Translations under genes and position numbers: made by a program
IMG/VR virus record: IMGVR_UViG_3300024239_000014
Span: 62,001 to 126,000 of that record
Reading direction: 5' to 3' (one strand)
DNA: 64,000 bases
Notes under the pieces: generated by a model
Seen by the model: the letters and a program-made list of their open reading frames with translations, nothing else
Told to the model about the DNA's origin: nothing
The model's database searches: none
In this document: one piece after another, positions 10,509-37,677 of the stretch
Position numbering within the stretch: position 1 is the stretch's first letter
Layout: each line of letters starts with the position of its first letter

Positions 10509-10653
10509 GGCAGTTCCTCAAACTAAGGATAAAGGGTAGGGCGGTTTATCGTATGGTACCTACCCTCTGACGGTAACATTCAGCCATAGATTGAGAGGGT
10601 GAAATACGCTTTTTATTCCCCCATTCAGTCCGATGGTCCACACGGAGTCGCCC

Positions 10654-23038: not shown

Positions 23039-26000
23039 TGCCGATTATCTATCTGGGTAACCAAGCACCCACAGCCGCAACACCAGTAAGGGTGTATGTC
23101 CGCAACACGAACCTGTTATTGGCGAGTACTGCGCCATATCGTGCCGCCGAAGGCGATGTCATCACTTCGATCTACATCACGCGCGGTGACAACATCAACG
23201 CCAGTGGCAGCTTTAAGGGTGTCATTTACGTTTCAGACGTCGACGATATCGCAACAGCCACTCTGTTGAAGGTTGTTGCGTTTCCGCTGGTAACGGCGCC
23301 GGCGTGGTCGATGCAAAAGACCACCATTGAACCGGTACCGCTGGTGTCTGGTAAGTACTACTGGTTCGCGTTCCGCAACTTCCCCGGTGCGTATGTGGCT
23401 AAACCAGGCACCATGACCCATCAGAGCGCACTTGCAACTATCCTCTCCACCGACCCGGATCACCCGAGTCTGGCTGGTCTGACGTTCACTAACGTCAGTG
23501 GTGGGTGTTTGGTCGGCTTTGAAGCCATGAACTTGTTTGGTCGCGATACCGTTATTCTCGGCAGTGCTCAGACATCTCCGAACAATCACATTGCTCGTGA
23601 TGCTGCTCAATACCGTGCCGAAAACGTTCGAGTACGTTTCGGCGAATTCACCAACCGCGGTATCCGTGTAGAAGTACGTACCAATGGATCGTTCATGATC
23701 CATGGGGAGGGTAACCACACCTTCCCGGTGCAGTTCTCAACCGATAGCGGCAATACCTGGTCGCCTGAACAAGCAGTCACCGTTCGCGATGCTACTGTGG
23801 CTGCACCGGTGACCACACCTAACCGTCCGCCGGTGGTGGCAGGTGCTGCTGTGTTGCCGGTAATGCAAATCAATGCAGATAACACCCTGACCGCCTCGTC
23901 ACTCCTGCAAGGGGCTACTGACGCCGACGGTAATGCAATGGTTATCGAAGATCTGGTATTGACCGCAGGTGTAGCCACGATCACTGGTACTGGCCCGTGG
24001 GTGGTGCGTCCGACCACGTCTGCTCAGCTCACGTTCGGTTATACCGTGTCTGACGGCAACGGTGGTACAGTGCAACAGACCGCTACGGCACTGGTCAACC
24101 GTCCGCCGGTATCGTCCGGTGTACTGTCTCTTGCCAACACAGATGTTGGTGTTGGTCTTGTGGTATCGACCAACGACCTTCTTGCCAACGTCAGCGACCC
24201 AGATGGTGATGCACTGACAATCACCAACGTTGTGGTAACCATGGGTACAGGTACCGTCACCGGCACTGGCCCGTATACCATCACCGGTACTGCAGCAGGG
24301 ACCCTACAGCTCGCTGTGACCGTGTCCGATGGGCGCGGCGGTACCGTGGTACAACAGGTAAGCATGCAGGCTGTAACCCCGATGGTGGTTGCTCAGAACC
24401 TCGCTGTCTTTAACGGTACCTCGGCCTATTCGACGATCGAGAATTGGGCGCCAACTGGGAAGTATGGTGTTTACGCTGTGTTCGATACCATCCCGACTGT
24501 TCAGGATGCGTACCTGCTAGTGGATTCGAACAACCGGTACATCTCGGTGCTCGGTAACCAAGGTAAAGCGCAGTTTGGGGCTCTGTTTCCAGCAGCTACG
24601 CTGCCACAGTTGCCGGTAACCAAGTACTTCAGCGCTATCGTTGAAAACGGCAAGGTAACGTTCAGCGACGGCGTGAACGATGTCTCCGTCACCGATCCCG
24701 AAATCACGCTTGGATCTACTTATAGCGTCATTGGTAAGCGCGGTAGCGTATTCTCCAACATGTCGCTGTCAACTCTGATCCTATTTGATTTCCAGACGGA
24801 GTCCAACAGCCGGGTGTACCGTGCCGATGCTTCTGGTCAGCTTCTGTCAATTGTGGCAGGCAAAGCAAACCCAGCCAACATCAACTTGACTGCAGCGGGT
24901 ACGCCCAATGCGATGTACGAACCGGCAGAACTAACCAACATCAACACCGCGGCAGCATGGTCAACGTGGTATGACTCCACCTTCACCGGTGGTCTGGTTC
25001 CATCGCGTATCACCAGTCCTACGCGTGTGTCTGATTTCGGTACGTTGTTCTCAGGCGCCGGCCAAGCCTGGCTTCAGACTTTTGTAGCCATGCACCGTCT
25101 GACTGGCAGCGACATCTACCTGACCCGCGCGAAGGATCTGGTAGACTACATGTTCAACTACACCGACGATAAGCGCCTGTCGCGCAGCGAGATTCATCTG
25201 ACAACCACTCCGGAAGATGACCGCTATGTGGAAGCGCCTAAACAGTACCTGTACACCGGCGATGGTGGTACCCGTGTTACTGGGCTGGCCGCTAAAGGCT
25301 GGCGCCGTCACAACGGCACTGGGTGGGTTGTGGATGTGCAGACTTCTGGTCTGATTGCTTCCGGGATCGCTCGTCTGGCCGATTACATGTTGTCACAAAC
25401 CAACCTGTCGTCGTACCACGTTTGGGCGGCTCAGGTGCTGACGGATCTCCGTCCAATCCTGAATGAACACGACACCAGCTGGTCGGATACCAAGAACACC
25501 GTCAGTGTGGGCGGTTTCTGGTATTACCTCAACGTGATTGATGGTGCCCAGAATGCTAATAGCTTCGGGGATACCGGGAAGCTGAGCAATCCGCTGCCAT
25601 TCAACCATGGGTTGCCGATGGGTGTGGCTATGGCCATTATCAATCGCTGGCAGACCGTACCGACCTACAACACCAAAGCTGCTGCTGTGGTTGATTTCTT
25701 CCGCCGTCATTGGTGGGCAGGTACCAACAGCGATCGTCTGTGGTGGGCAGGTTGGGATGTCACAGCCAACAACCGTAAAACGGTGGATGTGGCGACTGCT
25801 GCTAATGTTGACGTGCCGTCGGTCTACTGGCTCCACAAGCTGGGTTACAACTTCTCGCAAGCGGAAGTCGTGGCTATGGCTCGCGGTATCTTGGGCGCCG
25901 AATACGCAGGTACCGGTGTGCTCCATAACCGCATTGATCGCGTGGCGAAAGATGTTGGTGACGACTTCGCCAAAGATGATGCGGCGCAAGCAGTCGGCCA

Positions 26001-28239
26001 GTTCCTGTTGTCGGTCCAGCAACTCGACTCCTCGCTCTACAGGCTGGCTAAGCGCGCCATGCGCCGCTATCTGACCCGCCCGGTGTCTAACAGCACTGCT
26101 TGGGGCGTTTACGCTGTGGCTGCTTTTGATCTGCTGGTACAAGGCGCCAAAACCGATCTCTTTGGTGCTTACGATGTTAGTCCCACGGTTACGAACGCAG
26201 CACCGACTGGTACTGCAAGTATTAACTTGGGTCAAAGCAATGTTGGCGACATCATTGAAATCACCCCTGCCGTACTCTTGGCCGGTATTACGGATGCCGA
26301 CGGCGACCCGCTGACTGTGGTTGATTTGGAAATCATCTCCGGTACTGGTGTACTTGAGTCGGTTGCCAGCAACCCGCCCACTGTAACCGGCCCTGTCAGT
26401 CTGGCTGGCCCTATCGAGGGTCAGAGCATCGTTGTTGAAGTCGAAACGCTTCTCGAGGGTGCTGTAGACCCAGATGGCGATGTGTTGAGTGTGCGTAACG
26501 TATCGGTTGTTTCTGGCCCCATTACGATTTCTGGCACAGGTCCGTATACCGTCACCGCCACTGGCGTTGGCGCAGCGACACTGAGTTACGAAATCACTGA
26601 CGGTACAGGCAACACCCTTGCTCAGACTGCGACCATGACTACTCGCGCAGCGCCTGTGCTGAGCGGTACAGTACCTGTTGTTAGTGGGTTCACGGGTACG
26701 GTTGCAACTGGTCAGACGATCCGTGTCTCCGGTAGTAACCTGGCGTTGTCTCCGACCATTCTGGCAATCAAAGGTAACGAAGCAGCCGCCGGCACCAAGG
26801 TGGCCGACCACGCGCCATTTGGTCTGTTGGAGCATGGCCCTGTACCAGATACTTGGCGCTTTGCAGGCGACGGCACGATCGTGCTGACAGGTCAGGTATC
26901 TGATGTGGTGGAAGTGTACAAAGTCTTCCCGACGAAGAAGCACTCCGTCTTCGCGCATTACCATCTTCGTTACGAAAATGTGATGCCGAGAGCGAACTTC
27001 CCAGTTGGCGCACAGACTAAGGAACTCCGGTTCAGTCCGAATCAGAGCAACCTCCACAGCACCGGCCTCGTAATTGGTACTGGCTGGAATGCCATTGCCG
27101 ACCAGCTCTGGATCTACACCGGCGGCGGTAGCAATACCACCATCAGCGGTATGACCAAAGAAATGGCTGAGCAGTGGCACACACGCTCAACAGGTGCGAA
27201 GGTCACCAATGGTGTCGCCGTTCTGTCGAATATCGTATCAGGGCCCCTTACTGGTCAGCGGTATAACGAAAACGTTAGCGTCGCAGCCGATTACGACGGC
27301 TTTGGCAATGTGCTGATGCCGTTCTTCATTCGCGACGGTCTGACGCTCGATATGCGCATCCGCAACCTGATCGTACTTGACGGTTACGCTCGTGTCGAAT
27401 TGGGTAACCGCCCGAACCGTGCTGAGTGTACGATTCAGGATACGCAGTACGCTGCCATGGCTGGTAGCGACATTGACGTGAACCTGGATCTGAGCATGTT
27501 CTCTAGTAATGACGACATTTACTTGTTCGCCATTAACGAAGATAACGTGTATTCAAACGCCATCAAGATTCGTGACAAGCAGGTGGTGGCCTACAACCGT
27601 ATTGCCGATACGCTCGGCCTGTCTCGCGCCATGAATAACGGCGCGAGTTATCTCACCATGGATACTGCGTACGCAGCGTCTGTGCTTGAGAAGGCTTGGG
27701 TCGATTACCGGATTGGGTTCAAGGTCAATGGCTGGAATTCCACAACGTCGACCGAAACCGATCTTGGCTTCAGTGCCAGCTTGGCTTCGGCCAGCCGTGG
27801 TAACCTGGCCGTCAACCGGACCACAGGTGCAGTGACGCTCAAATCTCAAGTGAACAACGTTTCGGTAACTGTAGCAACTGTTAACCCAGCGACCTTCTTG
27901 GGTAACCGGTACGATTGGGTGCTGCGGATTCCGAAGAACACCGGTGAGATGATCCAGCTGTATAACGAAACAGTGGCTGATGGTCTGGTGCTCCTGGGTG
28001 AGGTGGCTCGTCCGGCAACGTTCGACAACTTTGCACCTGAGCGCTGGATGGCAGGTTACAGCAGCGCGCGCATGAATGGCGTGCTGTACTACCTGGGTTG
28101 TTTCGGTCACGATGGTCTGCCGATCTTCGATCTGCGTTTGAACGAAGGTTCTGGCCTGGTCGCTTACTCGGAAGGCGGGGTGGTCGCTCAGGCAACCATC
28201 AGTCAGAGTGGTGCGTCCATGACCTGGGTCACGGCGTAA
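23038..28239 (+). CDS. Giant modular receptor-binding protein: cadherin-like repeats, LamG-like domains, helical enzyme-like domain
   Basis: About 1733 aa; start overlaps the previous stop. Repeats N-x-PP..LL..D-[AP]-DG-[DN]..GTGP[WY]..[ST]DG-x-G at 23821, 24097, 26194 (half) and 26371. Confidence 0.8.
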   Translation: MPIIYLGNQAPTAATPVRVYVRNTNLLLASTAPYRAAEGDVITSIYITRGDNINASGSFKGVIYVSDVDDIATATLLKVVAFPLVTAPAWSMQKTTIEPVPLVSGKYYWFAFRNFPGAYVAKPGTMTHQSALATILSTDPDHPSLAGLTFTNVSGGCLVGFEAMNLFGRDTVILGSAQTSPNNHIARDAAQYRAENVRVRFGEFTNRGIRVEVRTNGSFMIHGEGNHTFPVQFSTDSGNTWSPEQAVTVRDATVAAPVTTPNRPPVVAGAAVLPVMQINADNTLTASSLLQGATDADGNAMVIEDLVLTAGVATITGTGPWVVRPTTSAQLTFGYTVSDGNGGTVQQTATALVNRPPVSSGVLSLANTDVGVGLVVSTNDLLANVSDPDGDALTITNVVVTMGTGTVTGTGPYTITGTAAGTLQLAVTVSDGRGGTVVQQVSMQAVTPMVVAQNLAVFNGTSAYSTIENWAPTGKYGVYAVFDTIPTVQDAYLLVDSNNRYISVLGNQGKAQFGALFPAATLPQLPVTKYFSAIVENGKVTFSDGVNDVSVTDPEITLGSTYSVIGKRGSVFSNMSLSTLILFDFQTESNSRVYRADASGQLLSIVAGKANPANINLTAAGTPNAMYEPAELTNINTAAAWSTWYDSTFTGGLVPSRITSPTRVSDFGTLFSGAGQAWLQTFVAMHRLTGSDIYLTRAKDLVDYMFNYTDDKRLSRSEIHLTTTPEDDRYVEAPKQYLYTGDGGTRVTGLAAKGWRRHNGTGWVVDVQTSGLIASGIARLADYMLSQTNLSSYHVWAAQVLTDLRPILNEHDTSWSDTKNTVSVGGFWYYLNVIDGAQNANSFGDTGKLSNPLPFNHGLPMGVAMAIINRWQTVPTYNTKAAAVVDFFRRHWWAGTNSDRLWWAGWDVTANNRKTVDVATAANVDVPSVYWLHKLGYNFSQAEVVAMARGILGAEYAGTGVLHNRIDRVAKDVGDDFAKDDAAQAVGQFLLSVQQLDSSLYRLAKRAMRRYLTRPVSNSTAWGVYAVAAFDLLVQGAKTDLFGAYDVSPTVTNAAPTGTASINLGQSNVGDIIEITPAVLLAGITDADGDPLTVVDLEIISGTGVLESVASNPPTVTGPVSLAGPIEGQSIVVEVETLLEGAVDPDGDVLSVRNVSVVSGPITISGTGPYTVTATGVGAATLSYEITDGTGNTLAQTATMTTRAAPVLSGTVPVVSGFTGTVATGQTIRVSGSNLALSPTILAIKGNEAAAGTKVADHAPFGLLEHGPVPDTWRFAGDGTIVLTGQVSDVVEVYKVFPTKKHSVFAHYHLRYENVMPRANFPVGAQTKELRFSPNQSNLHSTGLVIGTGWNAIADQLWIYTGGGSNTTISGMTKEMAEQWHTRSTGAKVTNGVAVLSNIVSGPLTGQRYNENVSVAADYDGFGNVLMPFFIRDGLTLDMRIRNLIVLDGYARVELGNRPNRAECTIQDTQYAAMAGSDIDVNLDLSMFSSNDDIYLFAINEDNVYSNAIKIRDKQVVAYNRIADTLGLSRAMNNGASYLTMDTAYAASVLEKAWVDYRIGFKVNGWNSTTSTETDLGFSASLASASRGNLAVNRTTGAVTLKSQVNNVSVTVATVNPATFLGNRYDWVLRIPKNTGEMIQLYNETVADGLVLLGEVARPATFDNFAPERWMAGYSSARMNGVLYYLGCFGHDGLPIFDLRLNEGSGLVAYSEGGVVAQATISQSGASMTWVTA

Positions 28240-28326: not shown

Positions 28327-29709
28327 ATGCCGGTTATTGCAACACCGCCAGGTCAGCATCCAGGTCCGTGGCAGCTCACGATCCCTGAAGCAGGGTCGGT
28401 AACACTGCGGTACCGCGTTTCAGACGGTAAAGGCGGGTTCTTCACTCGCACGGCCATCGCATCTGCCATCGTACCTGTGGTCGGGTATGACTACTACGCC
28501 AATAAGTTCGGCCTCTATCGCAAAACTGTGAACTCGCTGGCCGCGTTTTTGACAGTGCCATCTCACTCGGTCGTTGCGGGCACAGTGTCCGACGAATGGC
28601 GGTTCGGTATCAAACTTAAAACCTGGGAGCCTTACACAGCTGGTACCCAAGGCATTGCTTGTCTATGTCGAGGTACGACGTCGAACACAGAAGAGGTCTT
28701 CATCATCAGTAACCTGGGACCGATCTCGATCAAGTATGTCGGCGGTACCACGGTAACTTTGACTGGAAACCATGGGATTCAACTTGGTCAGCGCGTTGAT
28801 TTTCGTTTGATTGTACCGTCAGTTGTCGGTCAACCAATCGAACTTTACGCCAGGATTAACAACGGCGCTGAATTTCTGATGGGTAGTGCGCTGACGCCTG
28901 CATCGTCTGGATTCAATCCGAATCGTTGGCTCTCCGGTAACCAGGGCATCAACGGGATGCTGTTCTACGTAGAGCGGTATCGTGATGGCGTACCTCTTTA
29001 CCAGTTCACGTTTAATGACTTCTGGTCCACGACGTTCTTGTCGCGTCACGATCCTCAGGTAACCGCAGTCTTGACAAAAGTCAGCGGCCACATTGAGCCT
29101 CAGGTGGATGTCACTGAATGGACGCCAGCGACGCCGGCTGACGACTTAGTCGCTGTAACACGTGTCACGACGGCGTCGCTGTCGGTCGATCGACGGATGG
29201 TGCTGACGGGTATTAGCGCACGACCTGCTGGCGTTGCCAGGCGTTATCTGTCGTGGGTGCGCACTCACGACCTGACGTACGACCTGGGTCTTTGCAGTAT
29301 CGGCACCACCGAAACCGTTCGGTTCAATGCCGATGGATCGATCAGCGCGCGTGTTACTGGCATGAGCAGCACTGTCGTAATGCGACCTGCCGGTCCTCAT
29401 GTCTTGACGGGCACGAAGCAGTTGATCGAATTGGTCGTGACTGATGACCGTTTCCAGGTCAAGGTGGATGGTGTGTTGGTTGCTGAACACGTGGCCAATG
29501 GTCTGTCGTTCATTCCTGGCCAATACCTGGAAGGTGCGTCTGGTACCACCATCTGGCGCGGTCGCCTGTACAACCTCGCAGTGTACAACGACGACACCCT
29601 GATTGAGTACTGGCCATTGGATGTAGGCGAAGGAGTCGGTGTAATGACCAACACAGTTGGTACTGCTGTTGCGACATTGGGTTCTGCCAATACGTGGGTC
29701 CACGGATAA
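28327..29709 (+). CDS. Fibre-associated protein: half cadherin-like repeat plus two LamG-like domains
   Basis: AAGGAGG SD. Starts GPWQLT..TLRYRVSDGKGG; next domain is paralogous to the C-terminus of the 23038 gene; C-terminal FQVKVDG..WRGRLYNLAVY..YWPLD. Confidence 0.75.
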   Translation: MPVIATPPGQHPGPWQLTIPEAGSVTLRYRVSDGKGGFFTRTAIASAIVPVVGYDYYANKFGLYRKTVNSLAAFLTVPSHSVVAGTVSDEWRFGIKLKTWEPYTAGTQGIACLCRGTTSNTEEVFIISNLGPISIKYVGGTTVTLTGNHGIQLGQRVDFRLIVPSVVGQPIELYARINNGAEFLMGSALTPASSGFNPNRWLSGNQGINGMLFYVERYRDGVPLYQFTFNDFWSTTFLSRHDPQVTAVLTKVSGHIEPQVDVTEWTPATPADDLVAVTRVTTASLSVDRRMVLTGISARPAGVARRYLSWVRTHDLTYDLGLCSIGTTETVRFNADGSISARVTGMSSTVVMRPAGPHVLTGTKQLIELVVTDDRFQVKVDGVLVAEHVANGLSFIPGQYLEGASGTTIWRGRLYNLAVYNDDTLIEYWPLDVGEGVGVMTNTVGTAVATLGSANTWVHG

Positions 29710-29843: not shown

Positions 29844-31922
29844 ATGCCTCAGAATTTGGTGATTAAGTACCCTCTTGACCTGTCAGGGAATAACCCCACG
29901 AACCTGGTCAAGAATGAACCGCACACGATTGAGCCTACGGCCACGAATCGCGGTTTTGCATTGAACTACGGCCCTTTCTACACCAAGAGTGTAGTGGTCA
30001 AACACGTGGAATCAGGGAACTACCTGAGACCACGCCTGGATTACCTGTGCCTCCATCTGGATGAAATCGCTACGCGTGAATCTGGATACGAGGTCTGCAT
30101 CGCCATCCTCATTACCAACCAGACCTACAATGGTGAATTTGAAGTCACCTATCAGGTCGTGGGTGGCGAGTACAGTAGCTACGTGTCAGTGATTCAGCAG
30201 CTGGTAGAAGCACTCCAGCTCGATGACCGTCCTGTCAAGTGGGGCGATGTGATTGGTAAGCAGGATGAATACCCACCTGCGCCACACCTGCATACCCCGG
30301 ATGATCTGTACGGCTTTGAATTCCTTGTTGACGCATTGATGCGTCTGCACCAGGCGATTCTGCACGGCGATGCAACAGATCATGCGCAGATGAGACAAAA
30401 CATTCTCAATGCGCGCGCTTACGCCGAGCAATTGGCCGCCGGTGTACGCGAAGTCCTCGATCTTCACGTTACCAACCAGAACGATCCTCACAACGTCACT
30501 AAACTCCAGGTGGGTTTGGGGAATGTCGATAACTTTGCTACCGCCACGCCAGAAGAAGCGGCCAGTGCAACGGTGGCTAATAAGTTCCTGACGCCAGCGT
30601 TGTTGCATGGGGCAATACCGAACAGTTTGCCGATTACCCAGATCAATGGCGAAATTCAGCGTTTGTGGGACGCCATCAACGCCATCAACGCCATCCTCGC
30701 CCTCGGCAAGGGCACCACCACGATCTGGAACACCCTGACTGCGTGGTCGACACTGCGTCAGACGATGGCGGTGGCAAGTCGTAGCACGACTGTGCTTATC
30801 CCGGCTGGCCCGGATCGAACCAGTTCGTGGAATACTTCTTTCACAACTGCGTGGTCGTCTGATCGCCTGACAAACCGCATGACATCCATCGGTAGCAACT
30901 GGAACACGTCCTTCACTCAGAACACGACACGAACTACAAACGTGTCGGTGGTGACGGTATGGAACACCAATACGTCCCGCAACACCGGGTACAGTAAGGT
31001 GACCCAGACGTCTGAGAATATCGTGCAGAACACGTCAGTGTCATCAAGTAAGATCACGTCGTATCAGACCAGTTGGACGACGGAGATGGGGGTGGTAACC
31101 CGTACTTCTTCGTGGGTGACCGGTTTCTATTCGATCGCTTATATCGGACGTGAAACGTCGACTACAAACTACCAACAAGTATGGCAGGAACAGTCGAAGA
31201 ACACGAACACGTCGTGGTACAGTTACACTCCCATTGTGTCGTACCGTGCAGATGGGGCCGGCGGTAACGGGTGGCAAACGGTAGGTTTTACCCGTACGCT
31301 TAAATCACGTACGACGTCAACGACCGTAGGGCCGAGCAGCCGTGCCACGCAAACGACCTTTGCCACTGAATGGACCAGTGGTGGTTTCCGTCAGATGATC
31401 ATGACATGGAAAACCACGAGTACGCAGATTGGTGGCAACGTGTCGGCGTATGTCAGTACGACCTTCAACACTAACTTCTACACTGCGTTCCCGAAAGAAA
31501 GGTCCACATCGACCACAGTCTCGTCGCCGAACCTGGTACCTATGAGTCGCCAGACCAGCAAAACGACCAACACCACATTTAGTCGTGTGACATCGTTTAA
31601 CCAATCGCGCGACACCACCACGGCATGGACCATTGCTACGTCTTGGGCTACTCAGTATTCCAAGACAACCGCATGGGATCGTACCACGGACGTGATCACC
31701 AACATTGTTCAACAGACCAGTAATGCAGCAATGGTGCAAACCAACTTCAATACTGCTGTTGCAATGTCCAAAAGTACATCTGTGGTCACATCTGTGACAG
31801 TGGCTGGAGATAGCGAACGCCATAGTTCACGCCAGACCTCTTGGGATTCGACGTGGGGTACTGAGGCGAACACCAGCCAGATGACCCAGTTCATCCGCAA
31901 CACGCAGACGAGCTTTACGTAA
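29844..31922 (+). CDS. Virion fibre with Thr/Ser-rich (mucin-like) C-terminal domain
   Basis: N-terminal KYPLDLSG..EPH..YGPFY anchor domain and DPHNVTKLQVGLGNVDN repeat; last 403 aa contain 155 Thr+Ser by hand count. Confidence 0.8.
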   Translation: MPQNLVIKYPLDLSGNNPTNLVKNEPHTIEPTATNRGFALNYGPFYTKSVVVKHVESGNYLRPRLDYLCLHLDEIATRESGYEVCIAILITNQTYNGEFEVTYQVVGGEYSSYVSVIQQLVEALQLDDRPVKWGDVIGKQDEYPPAPHLHTPDDLYGFEFLVDALMRLHQAILHGDATDHAQMRQNILNARAYAEQLAAGVREVLDLHVTNQNDPHNVTKLQVGLGNVDNFATATPEEAASATVANKFLTPALLHGAIPNSLPITQINGEIQRLWDAINAINAILALGKGTTTIWNTLTAWSTLRQTMAVASRSTTVLIPAGPDRTSSWNTSFTTAWSSDRLTNRMTSIGSNWNTSFTQNTTRTTNVSVVTVWNTNTSRNTGYSKVTQTSENIVQNTSVSSSKITSYQTSWTTEMGVVTRTSSWVTGFYSIAYIGRETSTTNYQQVWQEQSKNTNTSWYSYTPIVSYRADGAGGNGWQTVGFTRTLKSRTTSTTVGPSSRATQTTFATEWTSGGFRQMIMTWKTTSTQIGGNVSAYVSTTFNTNFYTAFPKERSTSTTVSSPNLVPMSRQTSKTTNTTFSRVTSFNQSRDTTTAWTIATSWATQYSKTTAWDRTTDVITNIVQQTSNAAMVQTNFNTAVAMSKSTSVVTSVTVAGDSERHSSRQTSWDSTWGTEANTSQMTQFIRNTQTSFT

Positions 31923-31937
31923 CAAACTCACCTATGT

Positions 31938-31966
31938 AGGGGGCTTCGGCCCCCTCATTTATTCCG
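31938..31966 (+). terminator. Short hairpin (attenuator or processing site) inside the fibre-GT operon
   Basis: AGGGGGC-TTCG-GCCCCCT then CATTTATTCCG. Confidence 0.6.
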
Positions 31967-31976
31967 GAAGTTGAAA

Positions 31977-32225
31977 ATGGACAAATCCGTTGCTATCGAA
32001 TTTGAAAAGCTCAACACACGCGTTGCCGAGCTTGAAAAGCGCCTGGTTGCTGCTGAGGAACAGGCAAAGAACGCCGAGCAATTGGCACAAGAGTCGTTGC
32101 GCCTTGTTGAACGTGCGTCATCGCTCCTGGTGGAACATATCGCTACCTTCGATACCCGTGTGGCGGAAGCCTCGGATATTATCGTGGCTCGTGTGACCAA
32201 GCAGATCCCGCACTTGATGTTGTAA
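31977..32225 (+). CDS. Small coiled-coil protein
   Basis: About 82 aa with heptads LNTRVAELEKRLVAAEEQA; lies between the fibre and the GT genes. Confidence 0.7.
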   Translation: MDKSVAIEFEKLNTRVAELEKRLVAAEEQAKNAEQLAQESLRLVERASSLLVEHIATFDTRVAEASDIIVARVTKQIPHLML

Positions 32226-32240
32226 CGGAGTAGTTGACCC

Positions 32241-33104
32241 ATGAGTGATAGCAATAAAAAGAAAAAGGCTTCGTTGGACATTGTCCTGGCTAACACTTAT
32301 GCTTCTGAAGCCAATAAGGTAGCACACAGCGGGTACCTGACTCGCGCCGGTAAGATTCGTGAATCAAACCGCATTGCTGAGCTGCTGGTGGCCGGGGCCG
32401 CGAAGCGCAAGATCAAAATCCAGTACGATATTGCTTACGATGGCCATCCTCATGAGTTATCGTTCACGGAATGCTTTGGTGGCATGGGTGGTGTTTATAT
32501 CAGACCTGCGGACAGCAACCTGTCGCGGCAGATGCTGGCTTCACCGTTTAGAGCAACTCGTGATATCAACTTTCTCTTGAATGCTGAAGACAAATACGCG
32601 CAGCTACCCATCCACTGTCCGGTTGATCACGTGATCTTCCTGCCCGGTACGAACCTTCTGGATCGGTATAAGGCCGAAGTGTTCCGACCCTATTACAGAG
32701 AAGGCGTTAAGGTCAAACCACACCCCATCACGAGCGAGTATTTCCGTTTTCTGCTCCTGCGTGAATTTGGTTCAGACGTCCTTCCTCTTAAGGGTTCGGC
32801 ACAGTCGATCCTAAAGCAGGTGAAAGAAGTCACCGTGACGCAGCACACGGAGATGGGTCTTTACGCCCTATTGCAAGGCAAGAAGGTTAACGTCATCCCA
32901 GCAATGAAGGGACTGTTACCGGTGTACCGGTACTTCTACGAAACAGGTGAGCGCCTCAAGGAGGTGTTGTCGTCCCACCTGTCGGGTTTGTTCTTCATGA
33001 ACGATAACATCGAAGAACAGATCGAAGAATGGTTCGATTATTATCAATCCCAGTCCCAACTGCGTCAAACACGTTTCTTCGACGTGTTTGGAGGTAAACG
33101 ATGA
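32241..33104 (+). CDS. Putative GT-B glycosyltransferase, capsule-synthesis (KpsC/KpsS-like) type
   Basis: VKVKPHP and EVTVTQHTEMGLYALLQGKKV resemble the KxHP and V-x-T-x-x-S-x-x-G-x-EA-x-x-x-GK-x-V motifs of that fold. Confidence 0.5.
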   Translation: MSDSNKKKKASLDIVLANTYASEANKVAHSGYLTRAGKIRESNRIAELLVAGAAKRKIKIQYDIAYDGHPHELSFTECFGGMGGVYIRPADSNLSRQMLASPFRATRDINFLLNAEDKYAQLPIHCPVDHVIFLPGTNLLDRYKAEVFRPYYREGVKVKPHPITSEYFRFLLLREFGSDVLPLKGSAQSILKQVKEVTVTQHTEMGLYALLQGKKVNVIPAMKGLLPVYRYFYETGERLKEVLSSHLSGLFFMNDNIEEQIEEWFDYYQSQSQLRQTRFFDVFGGKR

Positions 33105-34054
33105 TTCTGTTCTCCTGCACTAACCGCGCTTATCAGGACGTGTCCTTGGTTTGGGCTCATTCGTTCAAGAACAGCTGCGAGAAGTTCGAAAACAATAAGA
33201 AGTTCACACCAATTCTTTTTTGCACGACCGATGTCGATACCGAACTCTTTGCTGATACAGGCATTGAAATTCGGTACTTGCCCACCATTGGTGGGGTGGA
33301 AGAAGGATTGTTCAATCAGACGACCACCGAAGGGATGGTGATGCGACTGAAAGCCATGGATCTCTTGCACGCTGAAGGCGTGGAAAAGGTCGCGTACATG
33401 GACACAGACACTTTGATCCGTGGTGACATCAGTGAATTGTTGTTGGCACCACTGACGCCCGAGAAACCAATAGCAGCGGCTTCCGACTTCGTGTACATCG
33501 ATGACGACCGCCTGGGATCGACGTACCAACAAATCGTCCCCGATTATCCGCGCAGAACATCGATCAACAAGAAGTACTTCAACTCCGGTGTGATGGTTCT
33601 GCTTCTAAGGCCGTTGGTGGAAGAAACCAAACGCTACGGCTGTACGTCGTTGGAATCCTTTTATCTGAAGCACAAGGAAATGTGCCGGTTCCCTGATCAA
33701 GACGCACTCAATAAGCTGGCAAGGGAATATGTCGGCCTACCGCGTCGGTACAACTTCTTCCCTGAGCTGCACATCTTCGCGATCATGTCCAGTGATGAAC
33801 TAATGCACCACCGTGCACGTATCTTCCGTGAAGGGGTGATCGTGCACTTCTTGTCATTGTTCAAACCCTGGGTCAAACATGATTATGTTAACACGGCAAC
33901 AATGCAAGTCCCATTTGAAATGTACTGGGAAGCATTGAAGCCCATCCGACACAAGCTGTCGCCTTCGTTCGTTGAAAATGTGCGTTATAACGTGGAAACG
34001 CATCGCATCATCATCGAGCAGGCCAGACACGGTCATTACAACGCCGAGGATTAA
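33101..34054 (+). CDS. Glycosyltransferase family 8
   Basis: VAYMDTD (DxD), YFNSGVMVL, FPDQDALN, IVHF..KPW. Confidence 0.92.
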   Translation: MILFSCTNRAYQDVSLVWAHSFKNSCEKFENNKKFTPILFCTTDVDTELFADTGIEIRYLPTIGGVEEGLFNQTTTEGMVMRLKAMDLLHAEGVEKVAYMDTDTLIRGDISELLLAPLTPEKPIAAASDFVYIDDDRLGSTYQQIVPDYPRRTSINKKYFNSGVMVLLLRPLVEETKRYGCTSLESFYLKHKEMCRFPDQDALNKLAREYVGLPRRYNFFPELHIFAIMSSDELMHHRARIFREGVIVHFLSLFKPWVKHDYVNTATMQVPFEMYWEALKPIRHKLSPSFVENVRYNVETHRIIIEQARHGHYNAED

Positions 34055-34055
34055 C

Positions 34056-34883
34056 ATGGCCGACGTTACAGTGATCATTCCAGCTTCTCGAGCTTTTACC
34101 TTAGAAGAGTGTTTGGTACACCTTAAGAGAAGCGTCGGGGTAACCTATCGCCTGATTGTAGTGCTGGCAAATCGTGATCCAGCATTGCGTAAACTGGCTC
34201 AGGGCGCCGGGGCTGAGATCATTGAACATTATGCCAAAGGTGACCAGCATAAGGCCAGGGCAATTGCCCTGGCCTCTGTAACCACCGAATTTGTTCATTT
34301 CTTAGATGACGACGATTTCATCTGCCCTGAATTCTTAAGAGACGGTGTTGCACTACTAAGAGATGATTCTACATGTGGCGTTGCGTTCAGTCTGCCATTT
34401 AAATCGGTGGGTGTTAGGAACGTACTCATTGGTCCGCATTTTCAAGCAGGGTTTGTTAATCCAAGCTGCACGATTTATCGCACCAAGATGATCCGTGAAG
34501 TCTTTGCGATGCTACCTGAGCCGGTGCTTTCCTCTTCTGAGGACAAGTTGTACACGCTTGTGTTAGCTTCGATCTTCCGTGCGAAATTCCGGTGTTTCAG
34601 AGCACCTGTAGTCCGCGGTTCCTTCGTAGAGAACCGGAAGGTCTGGGACACCCTAATGTCGAAATCTCTCTACGACTTTTGGTACCGGATCTTGCTACTT
34701 TTACCGGAATATCAAGACGATGCCGTTGCTGATCATTACGTCAGAACGGTATTGGCAGAAACCCGACAATGGTACACCCGATGCGTCACCTACTCTTTAC
34801 CTGTATCAATCGACATTATGAAAATCAGGGGATCGTTTGGTTATCAGCACTTAGAACCTTGGCCCAATCAGCACCAGTGTTGA
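34056..34883 (+). CDS. Glycosyltransferase family 2
   Basis: Start MADVTVIIPA; FVHFLDDDD and a downstream ED motif (SSEDKL). Confidence 0.85.
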   Translation: MADVTVIIPASRAFTLEECLVHLKRSVGVTYRLIVVLANRDPALRKLAQGAGAEIIEHYAKGDQHKARAIALASVTTEFVHFLDDDDFICPEFLRDGVALLRDDSTCGVAFSLPFKSVGVRNVLIGPHFQAGFVNPSCTIYRTKMIREVFAMLPEPVLSSSEDKLYTLVLASIFRAKFRCFRAPVVRGSFVENRKVWDTLMSKSLYDFWYRILLLLPEYQDDAVADHYVRTVLAETRQWYTRCVTYSLPVSIDIMKIRGSFGYQHLEPWPNQHQC

Positions 34884-35779
34884 AGGATTGTCGGATCATT
34901 CTTTTCCACGCCCACGATGTAAATCTTCAGCGATTTAAAGACGCCTTCCCTGACATCGAGTACCGTCTCGTCAAAAGTCCGATCGAAGGTAAGACCAAGC
35001 TGTTCAGCGCTCCGGTTAGCGAAGGAATGTGCTTGCGCATTGACGCTATGGATCAACTAATCCAAGAAGGAGTTGACAAGGTAGTCTACTCTGATGCCGA
35101 TGCGGTGTGGTTCAAGGATCCTGCCAAATTGTTCGACACACCGGTTGACGCGGTTCATCGTTTTGCAGCGGTACGCGACATGGTGTATCAAAAGCACCCT
35201 GAGTTTAAAGAAGCCTACCCCATTGCATGTCGCGATTGGGGTCACCGACAGGCTATCAGTGACAACTACTTCAACTCAGGTGTGATGGTTGTTTCGCTCA
35301 AGGGGTTATCGGATTACCTAACACTATTGGGTAATGCGTCACTGACAGAATACGTACAGCAGAACCAACACCGGTACCTCTTTCCGGACCAAGATCCGCT
35401 GAACGAACTAGGCCACAATCGCATCGAGCTTCCACGCGAATTCAATGCCTACATTGATCACGTGGTCGGTCATTCGATGACTGCCTGTGAAGTAATGGAA
35501 AACCGTTACAAGATTTCGCAGTCTGCTATCATTCATTGGATCACCATGACCAAACCCTGGTTACATGAACGTGAACCGAGTTTGACTAGCGCTGCCATGC
35601 CCCACGAGAAGTACTGGGAAGCTATGCAACCCGTACTGGAGTTTCTTGATGGGGGTTTTATTAAAGCTGTCTCGATCAAGCTTCGGCAGTATGCCCACCT
35701 CGTGGAGCATGCCAAGCGCGATTTCAAGGAAGTCGGAGGCTACCACCATGACACGTACCGTTGTTTCGTGCGTAAATAA
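34781..35779 (+). CDS. Glycosyltransferase family 8
   Basis: VVYSDAD, YFNSGVMVV, FPDQDPLN, IIHW..KPW; start MRHLLFTC. Confidence 0.92.
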   Translation: MRHLLFTCINRHYENQGIVWLSALRTLAQSAPVLKDCRIILFHAHDVNLQRFKDAFPDIEYRLVKSPIEGKTKLFSAPVSEGMCLRIDAMDQLIQEGVDKVVYSDADAVWFKDPAKLFDTPVDAVHRFAAVRDMVYQKHPEFKEAYPIACRDWGHRQAISDNYFNSGVMVVSLKGLSDYLTLLGNASLTEYVQQNQHRYLFPDQDPLNELGHNRIELPREFNAYIDHVVGHSMTACEVMENRYKISQSAIIHWITMTKPWLHEREPSLTSAAMPHEKYWEAMQPVLEFLDGGFIKAVSIKLRQYAHLVEHAKRDFKEVGGYHHDTYRCFVRK

Positions 35780-36653
35780 GGCGTACAGTGATCCATTAAA
35801 AGTCTGGCTCAGTGTAATGGCTGAGCAACCCTCGCACCCTCACGTGATCCTGTATCACGCCAGCGACATTGATCCCAATGATTTCCCCACCTCAGTGGAG
35901 GTCACGTGGCGGTTGCTGGATGTGCCTACTCAGAAGTCCACCAGACCTCATCGCCGTCAAGGTATCCTGATGCGGTTTCTGGCGTTCGATGATCTCCATG
36001 CGCGCAAGATGACCCACATCGTGTACATGGATCTCGATGCGTTACCTTTTGGTAACCTGTCACCACTTCTGAATGTGCCGGTGCGTGCATCCTCACCCAT
36101 TGCCGCTGTACCTGATTTGGTGTTCCTGGGGTCTAAGCAGTACGACGCGTACTACGACCGGAGTCGTCCTGAAATCGTACATCGTTTGAACTTCAATCCG
36201 CGGTATTTCAATGCTGGGGTGATGGCGATTTATTTGCCAGGACTCTATGCGCGGTTAAACGGCAAGACGTTGTACGAGTATTGGGAAGAAAACAAACACC
36301 GGTACTTGTTTCATGGTCAGGACCCATTGAATGAACTGGTACCTGATTATACGCCTTTACCGGCGACCTTTAACGCCTTTGCCGATCTGTACATTGCACC
36401 GAAGATGACTGAACATCAACGTGAGTTGCACACCTCGGTGATTAGCAATGCCGCTATCGTGCATTGGCTATCCAATACAAAGCCGTGGGAGGCGCTTAGC
36501 AACATTCCAGTTGCTTGGGCTATGATGCCTCACCAGTTGTACTGGGATGCAGCACAACGCGTTTTAGACCGCTTAAGCGAGGGGTTTGTAACGGCACTTA
36601 CTGAAAACCTCCGACGATACGAGGAACTGACGCATGACGAAGCCGTTGTGTAG
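35748..36653 (+). CDS. Glycosyltransferase family 8
   Basis: GGAGG SD; IVYMDLD, YFNAGVMAI, GQDPLN, IVHW..KPW. Confidence 0.9.
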   Translation: MTRTVVSCVNKAYSDPLKVWLSVMAEQPSHPHVILYHASDIDPNDFPTSVEVTWRLLDVPTQKSTRPHRRQGILMRFLAFDDLHARKMTHIVYMDLDALPFGNLSPLLNVPVRASSPIAAVPDLVFLGSKQYDAYYDRSRPEIVHRLNFNPRYFNAGVMAIYLPGLYARLNGKTLYEYWEENKHRYLFHGQDPLNELVPDYTPLPATFNAFADLYIAPKMTEHQRELHTSVISNAAIVHWLSNTKPWEALSNIPVAWAMMPHQLYWDAAQRVLDRLSEGFVTALTENLRRYEELTHDEAVV

Positions 36654-37677
36654 GGCACCGTTCACGACCTTTAACCACAAACCCGAAGGGTATCGGCCGT
36701 GTTGTCAACGTCAGAACCCGGCAGTAGTGCACACCGATGGTAACTGGTGGAATTCTGAATACCTGCGTGAATTCAGGAAATCCATGTTTTCCTACGACAC
36801 CCTATCAGACGTGTGTAAGCGGTGTTACGACCGCAAAACTGCCGATGATCCGGGATACAGTTTACCATTCGATCTCAAGGACTATAACCCCAAGACGGGC
36901 GAAGTATACGCACCGCCGAAACAAGTGCTGGTTTTTACAGGCACAAAGTGTGATCTGGCTTGCGATATGTGTGATTCGACTTTTTCGGATACGCATGCGA
37001 AGGTTTATCCTGACCGCATCATCGATATCGATGTGGTTACAGAAGACTCAGCCAGGCACATCATCGGCCGGTACAACCCAGAACAGGTGGTGATCTACGG
37101 TGGCGAACCTTTTGTTAGCCGTGAACTGTACCCGTTGGTACAGCTTGCTTTAATGAAACGGTCATCCATCACGTTCTTGACGAACGGTAACCGCGATCTG
37201 GCTAAACACCCGGTGTTTAAAGAGCTCGTACTGCCGAACGCTACTCGTTTCTCATTTATCTTTTCGATAGATGGGACTGCCGATGTCAACGAACAGATCC
37301 GCAAAGGAGTACGCACTGAACAGATCCTCAGCAATGTTGAATTGTGCAGAAGTGAAAAGATTTGGCACGAACTCCATTTTACGTGTTCGAAGCTTAATGC
37401 GCATAACCTGACTGCTTTCGTCCGTTGGGTTTTATCGCTCGAGTGTTACATGGTCCCGTTCTTTTCGCTCTCAGTAGGGATTGTCGATTTTCCGGATGAT
37501 TATCGTGCAAGTACCTTGCCGATGGGCGAACGGTTATCAATCTCCCGCGACCTTTGTGCGTTAAAGGAAGAAATCAACTCGGCAGTAGACGCTGGAACCA
37601 TGGTGTTTACACCCAAACAGTTTTCTGACTTGATGACGGGACTGGATGGCACACTTGCTTCGTTGGATTTAGAATAG
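36634..37677 (+). CDS. Radical SAM protein with N-terminal twitch/SPASM-like Fe-S domain
   Basis: N-terminal CRAPF..RPCC..WNSEYLREFRKSM..CKRC; radical SAM motif CDLACDMC; YGGEPF; SIDG. Confidence 0.9.
   Translation: MTKPLCRAPFTTFNHKPEGYRPCCQRQNPAVVHTDGNWWNSEYLREFRKSMFSYDTLSDVCKRCYDRKTADDPGYSLPFDLKDYNPKTGEVYAPPKQVLVFTGTKCDLACDMCDSTFSDTHAKVYPDRIIDIDVVTEDSARHIIGRYNPEQVVIYGGEPFVSRELYPLVQLALMKRSSITFLTNGNRDLAKHPVFKELVLPNATRFSFIFSIDGTADVNEQIRKGVRTEQILSNVELCRSEKIWHELHFTCSKLNAHNLTAFVRWVLSLECYMVPFFSLSVGIVDFPDDYRASTLPMGERLSISRDLCALKEEINSAVDAGTMVFTPKQFSDLMTGLDGTLASLDLE

Follow-up and report, generated by a model that had tools for sequence, protein, structure and literature searches.

In the 64,000-nucleotide stretch of viral DNA analysed here (hereafter the window), an open reading frame (ORF) at 29844-31922 (+), stop included, encodes a 692-aa protein, which matches phrog_2163 'virion structural protein' (E 3.7e-78) and is present as a single copy in a 249,640-bp virus record. 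We consider this ORF to be a tail-fibre paralogue of a chimallivirus-like jumbo phage. Its N-terminal part (aa 1-255, 29844-30608 (+)) is an anchor domain that contains the motif NPH..VGLGNVDN and is shared with jumbo-phage fibre proteins such as Goslar gp25 and gp29, both of which were detected in virions by mass spectrometry (PMC13742148); tblastn hits in 253 jumbo-phage records cover only aa 1 to about 270. The anchor is followed by a predicted helix (aa 266-289, 30639-30710 (+)), a likely oligomerisation neck, which is the only part of the AF2 model with pLDDT 70-74 (helix at model residues 3-25). The remainder (residues 290-692, 30711-31919 (+)) is a Thr/Ser-rich domain of 403 residues. 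The gene lies in a structural module next to a DUF7941 protein, a domain reported to be specific to chimalliviruses (PMC13742148). Only one real Thr-rich ORF exists in the 250-kb genome, since a second Thr-rich frame (236,834-237,316 of the genome) overlaps a longer ORF on the opposite strand and is taken as a shadow frame.

Genes downstream of the fibre gene

The fibre gene is followed by an 84-aa ORF at 31971-32225 (+) that resembles a coiled coil, although its coiled-coil Pfam hits are weak and sub-threshold. A 77-82-aa ORF is called at this position in the four relatives' contigs that include it, and analogous small acidic ORFs occur in KVP40 and QD01, with no detectable sequence homology. 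The next gene, at 32241-33104 (+), encodes a 287-aa phrog_26179 protein (E 2.1e-28). It is followed by a glycosyltransferase family 8 (GT8) gene at 33101-34054 (+) (PF01501, E 4.3e-17), a glycosyltransferase family 2 (GT2) gene at 33972-34883 (+) (PF00535, E 4.1e-7), whose true start is probably near 34056 by analogy with the 275-aa homologue in one relative's contig (L003), and two further GT8 genes at 34769-35779 (+) (PF01501, E 3.7e-18) and 35646-36653 (+) (PF01501, E 6.8e-22). The closest named NCBIfam model for the GT8 proteins is an LPS 3-alpha-galactosyltransferase, though far below its cut-off. The cluster is closed by a twitch-domain radical SAM gene at 36634-37677 (+) (PF04055; NF033640, E 7.8e-34). 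The order fibre, roughly 80-aa ORF, phrog_26179, GT8, GT2, GT8 and radical SAM is found in the window and in two relatives' contigs (L009 and L013); L003 and L002 show the same order until the contig ends, and L011 begins at phrog_26179. Thus, the synteny is conserved in every contig that reaches that far. Neither the Thr-rich domain nor these GT8 genes has a real match in 50,697 cultured-phage records.

The phrog_26179 protein matches no glycosyltransferase by sequence, but its predicted structure has a GT-B-like fold that is closest to CMP-Kdo and CMP-sialic-acid transferases. The AF2 model is only moderately confident (mean pLDDT 64.5, with a core at 85-92 and the N-terminal 90 residues poorly modelled). 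The resemblance to beta-Kdo transferases lies in the fold of the nucleotide-binding half. The top Foldseek hits were WbbB and KpsC (E 8e-5, probability 1.0), and VIA-align returned Z 9.1 for KpsC, 8.9 for a polysialyltransferase and 8.8 for WbbB, the values for the beta-Kdo transferases being 9.1, 8.8 and 8.3. However, the TM-scores are only 0.37-0.40, and Z 8-9 is only a little above the tool's stated background of 7-8. A KPHP motif at residues 159-162 is invariant in 10 sequences, a resemblance to the HP motif of CMP-sugar transferases that is seen at the motif level only, without residue-level superposition on an active site.

To see whether this family is associated with Thr-rich proteins beyond the window, we examined the IMG/VR loci that encode a phrog_26179 relative, and found a Thr-rich ORF just upstream in 55 of 56 of them, against 2 of 1677 control frames. 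The same holds in KVP40 and QD01 (T 29-30%), in Caulobacter phage Lullwater (gp41, T 26%) and, more weakly, in Cr30. In one locus, L039, the Thr-rich gene follows a tail-fibre gene and lies near a GT29-like gene. It should be noted that the IMG/VR loci collapse to two lineages at 40% identity, so that, counting the window clade, Lullwater-like phages and, more weakly, Cr30, there are about 4-5 independent lineages, not 55. Moreover, the Thr-rich partners in different lineages show no demonstrable sequence homology to the domain in the window, as its profile comparison with Lullwater gp41 and KVP40.0254 was not significant (hhalign probability 2-7%); the module shared across lineages is therefore defined by phrog_26179 homology plus the composition of its neighbour. 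In KVP40 the pair lies in a non-structural region beside QueC-like and radical SAM genes, and in phage DLP_6 phrog_26179 follows a fibre that is not Thr-rich.

Composition, conservation and residue alternation of the Thr-rich domain

The initial annotation had singled out this domain as a Cys-free Thr/Ser region with few Pro, Leu or charged residues, recurring T-[SA]-[WFY]-x-T units and a Gly-rich turn near its middle, and this observation is confirmed. The domain contains 23.6% T, 14.9% S, 4.5% W, 3.5% F, 2.7% Y, 1.7% P, 1.5% L, 4.0% D+E and no C. The claim of few charged residues holds only for the acidic ones, as R+K amounts to 7.7% (31 residues, net charge about +15) and these residues are periodic. 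The four strings given as examples of the unit are all present; T-[SA]-[WFY]-x-T occurs 5 times against 0.48 expected from 5000 shuffles (P = 6e-4), and the looser [ST][SA][WFY]x[ST] occurs 11 times against 1.26 expected (P < 2e-4). The sequence ADGAGGNG is at domain residues 180-187 (31248-31271 (+)) as claimed and is the richest Gly stretch, with smaller GG pairs at 224-225 and 241-242. The 11 N-x-S/T sequons against 10.5 expected (P = 0.50) are at chance, as had been stated, and N-glycosylation is rejected on this ground. The reading frame is real, as there are four full-length homologues at 57-85% identity, and dN/dS in this frame is 0.083.

The domain is highly constrained: its dN/dS of 0.083 compares with 0.103 for the N-terminal domain, there is only one gap column in 403 at 84% identity, and positions of W, R, T, F and Y are invariant. 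Furthermore, we found a strict two-residue alternation, in which the T/W/F/Y/R/K class shows an autocorrelation of -0.19 at lag 1 and +0.31 at lag 2 (z = 7.1, reached by 0 of 5000 shuffles), a pattern that is kept in all five homologues. The alternation runs unbroken through an N-arm (domain residues 1-125, 30711-31085 (+)) and a C-arm (domain residues 241-403, 31431-31919 (+)). In the N-arm, T, W, F, Y, R and K take the even positions and S, N, G, D and Q the odd ones, the even/odd counts being 24/8 for T, 4/17 for S, 0/12 for N, 7/0 for W and 7/0 for R; its block identity is 0.67-0.81, and it has no indels among the long-form relatives (57-85% identical), whereas the short-form relatives, i.e. 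P0111 and L009, lack 12 residues here. The C-arm ends in the 60 aa that are best conserved towards the short forms (49% identity). Between the arms lies a variable central module (domain residues 126-240, 31086-31430 (+)) with mixed parity, indels, and Arg/Lys spaced exactly 16 apart from 131 to 227 (autocorrelation 0.30, reached by 0 of 5000 shuffles at any lag). Together with residues up to about 303, most of this module from residue 177 on is missing in the short forms. ADGAGGNG is the least conserved block (0.38), carries indels of 3-4 residues in the 57-62% relatives, and is absent from the short forms.

The 16-residue period is clear only for the basic residues, as aromatics and S/T give 0.12, and it is lost in the short forms; the even spacing of basic residues (16, 8, 4) is compatible with an even-period beta structure but is not diagnostic. 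Self-comparison with hhalign found only weak internal repeats (P about 0.01), and a clean tandem-repeat architecture is therefore rejected. The domain does not show the regular 8-residue VxGxxxxx repeats of the T4 gp5C-type triple beta-helix, nor the 15-residue repeats with a conserved Gly/Pro turn of the adenovirus triple beta-spiral, and its Gly (4.7%) and Pro are not periodic. An exhaustive HMMER search for distant homologues of the domain found only three clusters, while Pfam, tblastn against phages and an IMG/VR pattern scan all found nothing, and a profile search against all PDB sequences gave no hit at E <= 10. Structure prediction, which had been proposed beforehand as a test of the domain's order, returned only low confidence: an AF2 monomer of the domain gave pLDDT 32.6 and an ESMFold2 trimer of the short-form domain gave pLDDT 26, neither showing a hairpin. 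With a six-sequence alignment, this says nothing either way. The ESM Atlas holds the sequence at pLDDT 0.44, with neighbours that score at chance level, and has no confident model for the wider class of Thr-rich proteins. The notion of a folded beta domain thus rests on sequence statistics.

Interpretation, rival readings and comparison with known systems

Taken together, the best explanation, in which we place an even degree of confidence, is that the ORF encodes one of several tail-fibre or host-recognition paralogues, in which the conserved anchor and the short helical neck carry a folded, beta-rich distal domain. In this view, one face of the two long arms carries Thr, Trp/Phe/Tyr and Arg/Lys, the other carries Ser, Asn and small residues, and the variable centre probably holds the specificity-determining part. 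The domain belongs to a compositional class of phage Thr-rich proteins that lie in or beside fibre modules and are encoded directly upstream of phrog_26179. The most likely mechanism is cytoplasmic O-glycosylation of the exposed Thr (and possibly Ser) ladder by the putative phrog_26179 transferase and the GT8, GT2 and radical SAM gene products, giving a glycan-coated fibre. While the composition, the alternation, the conservation, the synteny and the fold class of the neighbouring enzyme model are established by our analysis, the beta structure, the oligomeric state, the activity of the enzyme, the glycosylation itself, the sugar and the biological role (shielding, solubility, or adhesion to host glycans) are inferred; in particular, no glycan has been observed, the case for glycosylation is guilt by association, and the KVP40 context leaves another substrate possible.

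The interpretation offered in the initial annotation is only partly supported. It had proposed one giant beta-hairpin rather than a disordered mucin, each chain running out and back as in the T4 gp37 tip and turning at ADGAGGNG, with aromatics inside and hydroxyls outside, as a regular glycosylation scaffold or, alternatively, an ice- or mineral-binding surface. A constrained, beta-type structural domain is supported, and a glycosylation scaffold is supported by gene context, but as O-linked, not N-linked. Two register-locked arms around a variable centre, with the C-terminal 130 residues conserved, are what an out-and-back design would look like; in addition, a module near the start (domain 10-58) resembles the corresponding module near the C-terminal end of P0111 (BLASTP E 2e-4), which in a hairpin would lie side by side, and in the short forms the single parity break, a Gly-containing stretch, lies near the sequence midpoint. 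However, linear shaft-knob-shaft or beta-solenoid designs fit equally well. ADGAGGNG as the single apex is not supported, because the short forms that lack it also lack about 120 residues lying only on its C-terminal side but keep domain 2-176, so that the arms cannot be matched around it, and the Arg/Lys residues run in phase straight through it. The arrangement of aromatics inside and hydroxyls outside is contradicted, as aromatics share the parity of Thr and Arg/Lys, which cannot be reconciled with a two-faced strand of that kind. We therefore regard the hairpin model as a whole as very unlikely.

An unglycosylated fibre that binds host polysaccharide along its length, with phrog_26179 acting as a dedicated assembly factor or, together with the GT8 and GT2 genes, modifying host surface glycans or another acceptor, is possible but doubtful. 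Trp/Tyr plus Arg plus Thr surfaces are typical of carbohydrate-binding sites, the net charge of about +15 per chain would suit acidic polysaccharides, and the LPS galactosyltransferase-like GT8 model, the DLP_6 fibre and the KVP40 context are in line with this reading. On the other hand, the near-obligate pairing with extremely Thr-rich ORFs points to an enzyme-substrate or partner relation specific to Thr-rich proteins, a GT-B-like fold with an invariant KPHP is odd for a chaperone, and five glycosyltransferase-like genes placed directly after the fibre gene in every recovered contig argue for a shared task. A disordered, mucin-like spacer constrained only in composition might be suggested by the 38% Ser+Thr, the low pLDDT values and the lack of Pfam or PDB matches, but is very unlikely in view of the low dN/dS, the single gap column, the invariant aromatic and Arg positions, the 10.7% aromatics with only 1.7% Pro, and an alternation that a composition-only constraint would not maintain. 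Least likely of all is an ice- or mineral-binding array on a 16-residue-per-coil beta-solenoid in the manner of ice-nucleation proteins: Thr lies on one parity, Arg/Lys show the 16-residue period, and small residues on the other face would suit a narrow solenoid core, but bulky Trp and Arg interrupt the Thr face, and there is no ecological or contextual support, the context being a tail-fibre and glycosyltransferase module.

A broader reading, which is not excluded but remains tentative, is that many environmental phages of at least four unrelated lineages build a previously unrecognised kind of fibre protein, a register-locked 'Thr-ladder' beta ribbon (24-39% Thr overall and up to 69% in 80-aa windows) that current structure predictors cannot model, each paired with a dedicated CMP-ulosonic-acid-type transferase (phrog_26179) that O-glycosylates it. 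In this jumbo phage the module would have been fused to a chimallivirus fibre anchor and extended with three GT8 genes, one GT2 gene and a radical SAM enzyme to build a longer glycan. Tail fibres decide host range, and glycosylated virion proteins are so far documented only for mycobacteriophage capsids and tail tubes; our literature searches for Thr-rich phage fibre proteins or glycosylated tail fibres found nothing relevant. If the Thr face is glycosylated, virion glycosylation would be extended to receptor-binding fibres of jumbo and marine phages, whose cultured relatives infect Gram-negative bacteria. It would also assign a function to phrog_26179, an 'unknown function' family found in KVP40-like, Caulobacter and many uncultured phages, and to a class of 170- to 1500-aa Thr-rich ORFs now annotated as hypothetical or mislabelled (for example 'cell wall mannoprotein'). 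Cultured models exist in KVP40 (genes 0254-0256) and Lullwater (gp41-gp42). Independently of glycosylation, the alternation, unbroken for more than 100 residues and opaque to AlphaFold2 and ESMFold, marks a probable new fibrous beta architecture.

Among known systems, the closest are the tail-fibre paralogues of Chimalliviridae and phiKZ-like phages (Goslar gp25 and gp29; 'YomR-like' virion structural proteins, phrog_2163), with which the N-terminal 255 aa are homologous (33-40% identity in 253 phage records), but those proteins end in other domains, such as the Peptidase_S74 chaperone domain. The distal tip of T4 gp37 (needle domain, PDB 2XGF) is likewise a Ser/Thr/Gly-rich fibrous tip, with a possible out-and-back topology in which the variable part lies mid-sequence; however, gp37 residues 811-1026 contain seven iron-binding HxH motifs, and the tip has 14% Gly and 0.9% Trp, while the domain in the window has no HxH motif, a single His, 4.7% Gly and 4.5% Trp, a strict alternation that gp37 lacks, and no sequence similarity to the solved tip. 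Mycobacteriophage virion glycosylation (Freeman et al. 2023, as summarised in PMC12619734) similarly involves phage-encoded glycosyltransferases and C-terminal parts of virion proteins as glycan acceptors, a combination of genes that is also present here, but there the acceptors are the capsid and tail-tube C-termini of actinobacteriophages, whereas here the candidate acceptor is a 403-aa fibre domain, inferred to be structured, in phages related to phages of Gram-negative bacteria, with a Kdo/sialyl-transferase-like enzyme. The retaining beta-Kdo transferases (WbbB, GT99; KpsC/KpsS, GT107; KrkA) and bacterial polysialyltransferase are the best structural matches of the phrog_26179 model, although the phrog_26179 protein is shorter and has no sequence-level match to them. 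Finally, the serine-rich repeat adhesins of Gram-positive bacteria, which undergo cytoplasmic O-glycosylation by enzymes that include GT8 members, are also Ser/Thr-rich fibrous surface proteins encoded next to several cytoplasmic glycosyltransferases, but the system described here has no SRR dipeptide repeats and no GtfA/GtfB (GT4) pair, and its domain is aromatic-rich and positionally conserved.

The Thr-rich domain and the fibre protein that carries it

The domain under study comprises the C-terminal 403 codons of a 692-aa ORF located at 29844-31922 on the + strand of the window, which is part of a 249,640-bp virus record in which the domain occurs once. The initial annotation had described the domain as rich in Thr and Ser, lacking Cys, and poor in Pro, Leu and charged residues, and this observation held when we recomputed the composition: Thr makes up 23.6% of the residues, Ser 14.9%, Trp 4.5%, Pro 1.7% and Leu 1.5%, and there is no Cys, although the scarcity of charged residues is true only for Asp and Glu (4.0%), as Arg plus Lys make up 7.7%. 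The recurring T-[SA]-[WFY]-x-T unit occurs 5 times against 0.48 expected, and a looser form occurs 11 times against 1.26 expected, whereas the 11 N-x-S/T sequons equal the shuffle mean of 10.5. The Gly-rich stretch ADGAGGNG is located at domain residues 180-187 (nt 31248-31271), as had been claimed. The AT skew jumps to +0.106 in 30001-32000, against about -0.03 elsewhere, and the likely cause is the excess of ACN (Thr) and AGY/TCN codons in the domain.

The first ~255 residues of the ORF match phrog_2163 ('virion structural protein', E 3.7e-78), and in a tblastn search they matched 253 jumbo-phage records, always over aa 1 to about 270 only. One of these homologues is Goslar gp25, which a recent cryo-EM and mass-spectrometry study lists among the virion proteins likely to belong to the unresolved peripheral baseplate or tail fibres (PMC13742148). 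The window also holds a second phrog_2163 fibre paralogue (10633-12576, 647 aa, E 6.9e-95), which has several NPH..VGLG..V.N repeats and a different, duplicated C-terminal domain, and a DUF7941 protein (20591-23038), a domain reported only in chimalliviruses in the same study (PMC13742148). Directly upstream of the fibre gene lie a 1740-aa protein with four cadherin-like/Big_9 domains (23017-28239) and a 460-aa protein (28327-29709), the C-terminal parts of which look alike by eye. In addition, a 963-aa protein (14029-16920) has a 'tail fiber protein' N-terminus (phrog_4950) and weak WD40/beta-propeller hits, and may be the counterpart of phiKZ gp131, whose C-terminus is a seven-bladed propeller (PMC13250141). 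The ORF is therefore one of several fibre or host-recognition paralogues of a chimallivirus-like jumbo phage. A predicted helix (aa 266-289), the only confident part of the AF2 model, precedes the Thr-rich domain.

The domain itself is rare. An exhaustive HMMER scan of 1.84 billion representative proteins found only three clusters, i.e. its own, P0002 and P0111, and no hit was found in 50,697 phage records even at E <= 1, in Pfam, among PDB sequences, or in IMG/VR by a pattern scan. Its relatives are four long forms at 57-85% identity, and short forms of 669-671 aa, namely P0111/L002, L009 and L013 (here L numbers denote the contigs, phage genomes or loci compared, and P numbers proteins).

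Residue alternation and the topology of the domain

Against the relative in L003 (84% identity), the C-terminal domain has a dN/dS of 0.083 and one gap column, while the N-terminal domain has a dN/dS of 0.103. At 57-58% identity all indels fall in the centre of the domain, and Trp, Arg, Phe and Tyr positions are largely invariant, which is not how regions constrained only in composition evolve. In the present analysis we further found that the residue class T/W/F/Y/R/K has an autocorrelation of -0.19 at lag 1 and +0.31 at lag 2, continuing to lag 8, with z = 7.1 against shuffles. In domain residues 1-125 the even/odd counts are 24/8 for Thr, 4/17 for Ser, 0/12 for Asn, 7/0 for Trp and 7/0 for Arg. 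The phase is unbroken through residues 1-125 and again through 241-403, and is mixed in 126-240; all five homologues show the same two arms. The 31 Arg/Lys residues give 30 gaps, of which only four are odd (binomial probability about 3e-5), and a spacing of 16 dominates, with an autocorrelation of 0.30 that no shuffle reached at any lag. Such alternation is the signature of extended beta strands with two chemically different faces. It also means that aromatics sit on the same face as Thr and Arg/Lys, which contradicts the earlier suggestion that aromatics point inside and hydroxyls outside. By inference only, the small-residue face (Ser, Asn, Gly and Ala with some aliphatics) may be the buried one, and the Thr/Trp/Arg face the exposed one.

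The initial annotation had also proposed that each chain runs out and back as one beta-hairpin needle, as in the T4 gp37 tip, with its turn at ADGAGGNG, and this interpretation is only partly supported. In its favour, the two register-locked arms flank the least conserved part of the domain, with a block identity of 0.38-0.66 for residues 172-271 against 0.67-0.81 elsewhere, and the C-terminal 130 residues are as conserved as the N-terminal arm. Moreover, a module near the start (domain residues 10-58) resembles the corresponding module near the end of P0111, and in the short forms the single parity break lies near the midpoint. However, ADGAGGNG is the least conserved spot, with 3-4-residue indels, and the short forms lack it together with about 120 residues on its C-terminal side only, while keeping domain residues 2-176. 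Arg/Lys at 131, 147, 163, 179, 195, 211 and 227 run in phase straight through it, and the domain has no HxH motif against seven in the T4 gp37 tip, which in turn shows no comparable alternation. Structure prediction, which had been named in advance as a check, gave a pLDDT of only 32.6 for an AF2 monomer and 26 for an ESMFold2 trimer of the short form, and the ESM Atlas has no confident model for this protein or for the wider class, so none of these helps to choose between topologies. The domain may be an out-and-back fibre, a linear shaft-knob-shaft, or an even-period beta-solenoid or triple beta-helix, and we consider the exact hairpin model first proposed very unlikely.

Gene context and the neighbouring phrog_26179 protein

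In the window, L009 and L013, the gene order is fibre, a roughly 80-aa ORF, phrog_26179, GT8, GT2, GT8 (plus one more GT8 in the window), and then a twitch-domain radical SAM gene (36634-37677 in the window). L003 and L002 run out of contig partway through the same order, L011 begins at phrog_26179 and shows the downstream part, and L004 ends at the fibre gene; the synteny holds down to 41% fibre identity. These GT8 genes have no real homologues in cultured phages, and all three GT8 homologues recovered from a collection of 5.8 billion proteins belong to this lineage; the contig of one of them (P0124, in L013) was retrieved and shows the same gene order. Fibre homologues without the Thr-rich domain (Xoo-sp14 and DT01) lack the glycosyltransferase cluster. 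In Pseudomonas phage pPa_SNUABM_DT01 (L006, 10623-18756) the fibre homologue is instead followed by a cupin-like gene and six genes annotated as radical SAM, interspersed with hypothetical genes, so that the link between fibre genes and radical SAM genes is recurrent. The only cultured-phage homologues of the window's radical SAM protein are in 40 KVP40-like Vibrio phages, which also carry the Thr-rich/small ORF/phrog_26179 triad within about 12 kb, near QueC-like and GT1-family genes (KVP40, L012, 14814-24255).

The phrog_26179 protein has no sequence match in Pfam, NCBIfam or PDB. An AF2 model built from 10 sequences has a confident Rossmann-like core (pLDDT 85-92 over residues 120-220), though its mean pLDDT is 64.5. 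When this model was compared with known structures, Foldseek ranked the beta-Kdo transferases WbbB (GT99) and KpsC (GT107) first (E 8e-5, probability 1.0), the named matches in AlphaFold DB were mostly 'capsule polysaccharide biosynthesis protein', and VIA-align gave Z scores of 9.1 for KpsC, 8.9 for polysialyltransferase, 8.8 for WbbB and 8.3 for KrkA, followed by generic GT-B enzymes. The KPHP at residues 159-162 is invariant, and recalls the HP motif of CMP-sugar transferases, a resemblance that is no more than a lead.

The strongest result is the association of phrog_26179 with Thr-rich proteins across lineages. In Caulobacter podophage Lullwater the homologue gp42 directly follows gp41 (215 aa, T 26.0%, S 14.4%, W 3.3%), which shows the same alternation and follows the tail fibre gp40. 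In KVP40 and QD01 the homologue follows a small acidic ORF and a protein with T 29-30% and S 16-19%, which in Vibrio phage QD01 (L017, 3962-4468) is annotated as 'cell wall mannoprotein', presumably a composition-driven mislabel, and in Cr30 it follows proteins with 19-20% Thr. A scan of IMG/VR with the phrog_26179 alignment returned 62 loci, and of the 56 with at least 700 nt upstream, 55 have a Thr-rich ORF ending within 2 kb upstream on the same strand, while only 2 of 1677 other open frames qualify. These ORFs reach 1475 aa and up to 69% Thr in 80-aa windows, and show the same alternation (mean -0.27 at lag 1 and +0.33 at lag 2). However, the 56 loci reduce to two lineages at 40% identity, which, with the window clade, Lullwater-like phages and, more weakly, Cr30, makes about 4-5 independent lineages; the Thr-rich partners are alike in composition and pattern, but not demonstrably homologous, and in KVP40 the pair is not in an obvious structural module. 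Among the IMG/VR loci (L018-L078) is a family of ORFs of 900 to 1475 aa with 35-39% Thr overall (e.g. L021:1647-4661, L026:591-3542 and L068:3-4427), which have conserved N-termini with three 'VNDNGTLR'-like repeats and conserved C-termini ('..FWDGSQWSE'), each lying just upstream of a phrog_26179 relative, with no match in cultured phages and no confident Atlas model. In locus L039 the order is tail-fibre gene, a 71-aa ORF, a 925-aa Thr-rich ORF and phrog_26179, with a GT29-like (sialyltransferase) gene two genes further on. The window's own genome has only one genuine Thr-rich ORF among 629 frames, as a second Thr-rich open frame outside the window (236834-237316 of the virus record, 33 Thr in 100 aa) overlaps a longer ORF on the opposite strand and is probably a non-coding shadow frame.

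Possible glycosylation of the fibre and its precedents

Taken together, we propose a mechanism in which a fibre anchored by its N-terminal domain carries a beta-structured distal domain, whose exposed Thr/aromatic/Arg face is O-glycosylated in the cytoplasm. In this view phrog_26179 would add an ulosonic-acid-type sugar, in this lineage the GT8 and GT2 enzymes would extend or prime the glycan, and the variable centre would provide specificity. Our analysis establishes the sequence statistics, the conservation, the synteny and the fold class of the enzyme model, whereas everything biochemical in this proposal, including glycosylation itself, is inferred from them. The main rival, which we consider rather unlikely but do not dismiss, is an unglycosylated carbohydrate-binding fibre, with the neighbouring protein acting as an assembly factor or on another acceptor.

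In the library of papers searched, we found no description of Thr-rich phage fibre proteins paired with such an enzyme. There is a real chance, although we think it less likely than not, that the arrangement represents a widespread, undescribed glycoprotein-fibre system. The known precedent for glycosylated phage virions is the capsid and tail-tube C-termini of mycobacteriophages (summarised in PMC12619734).
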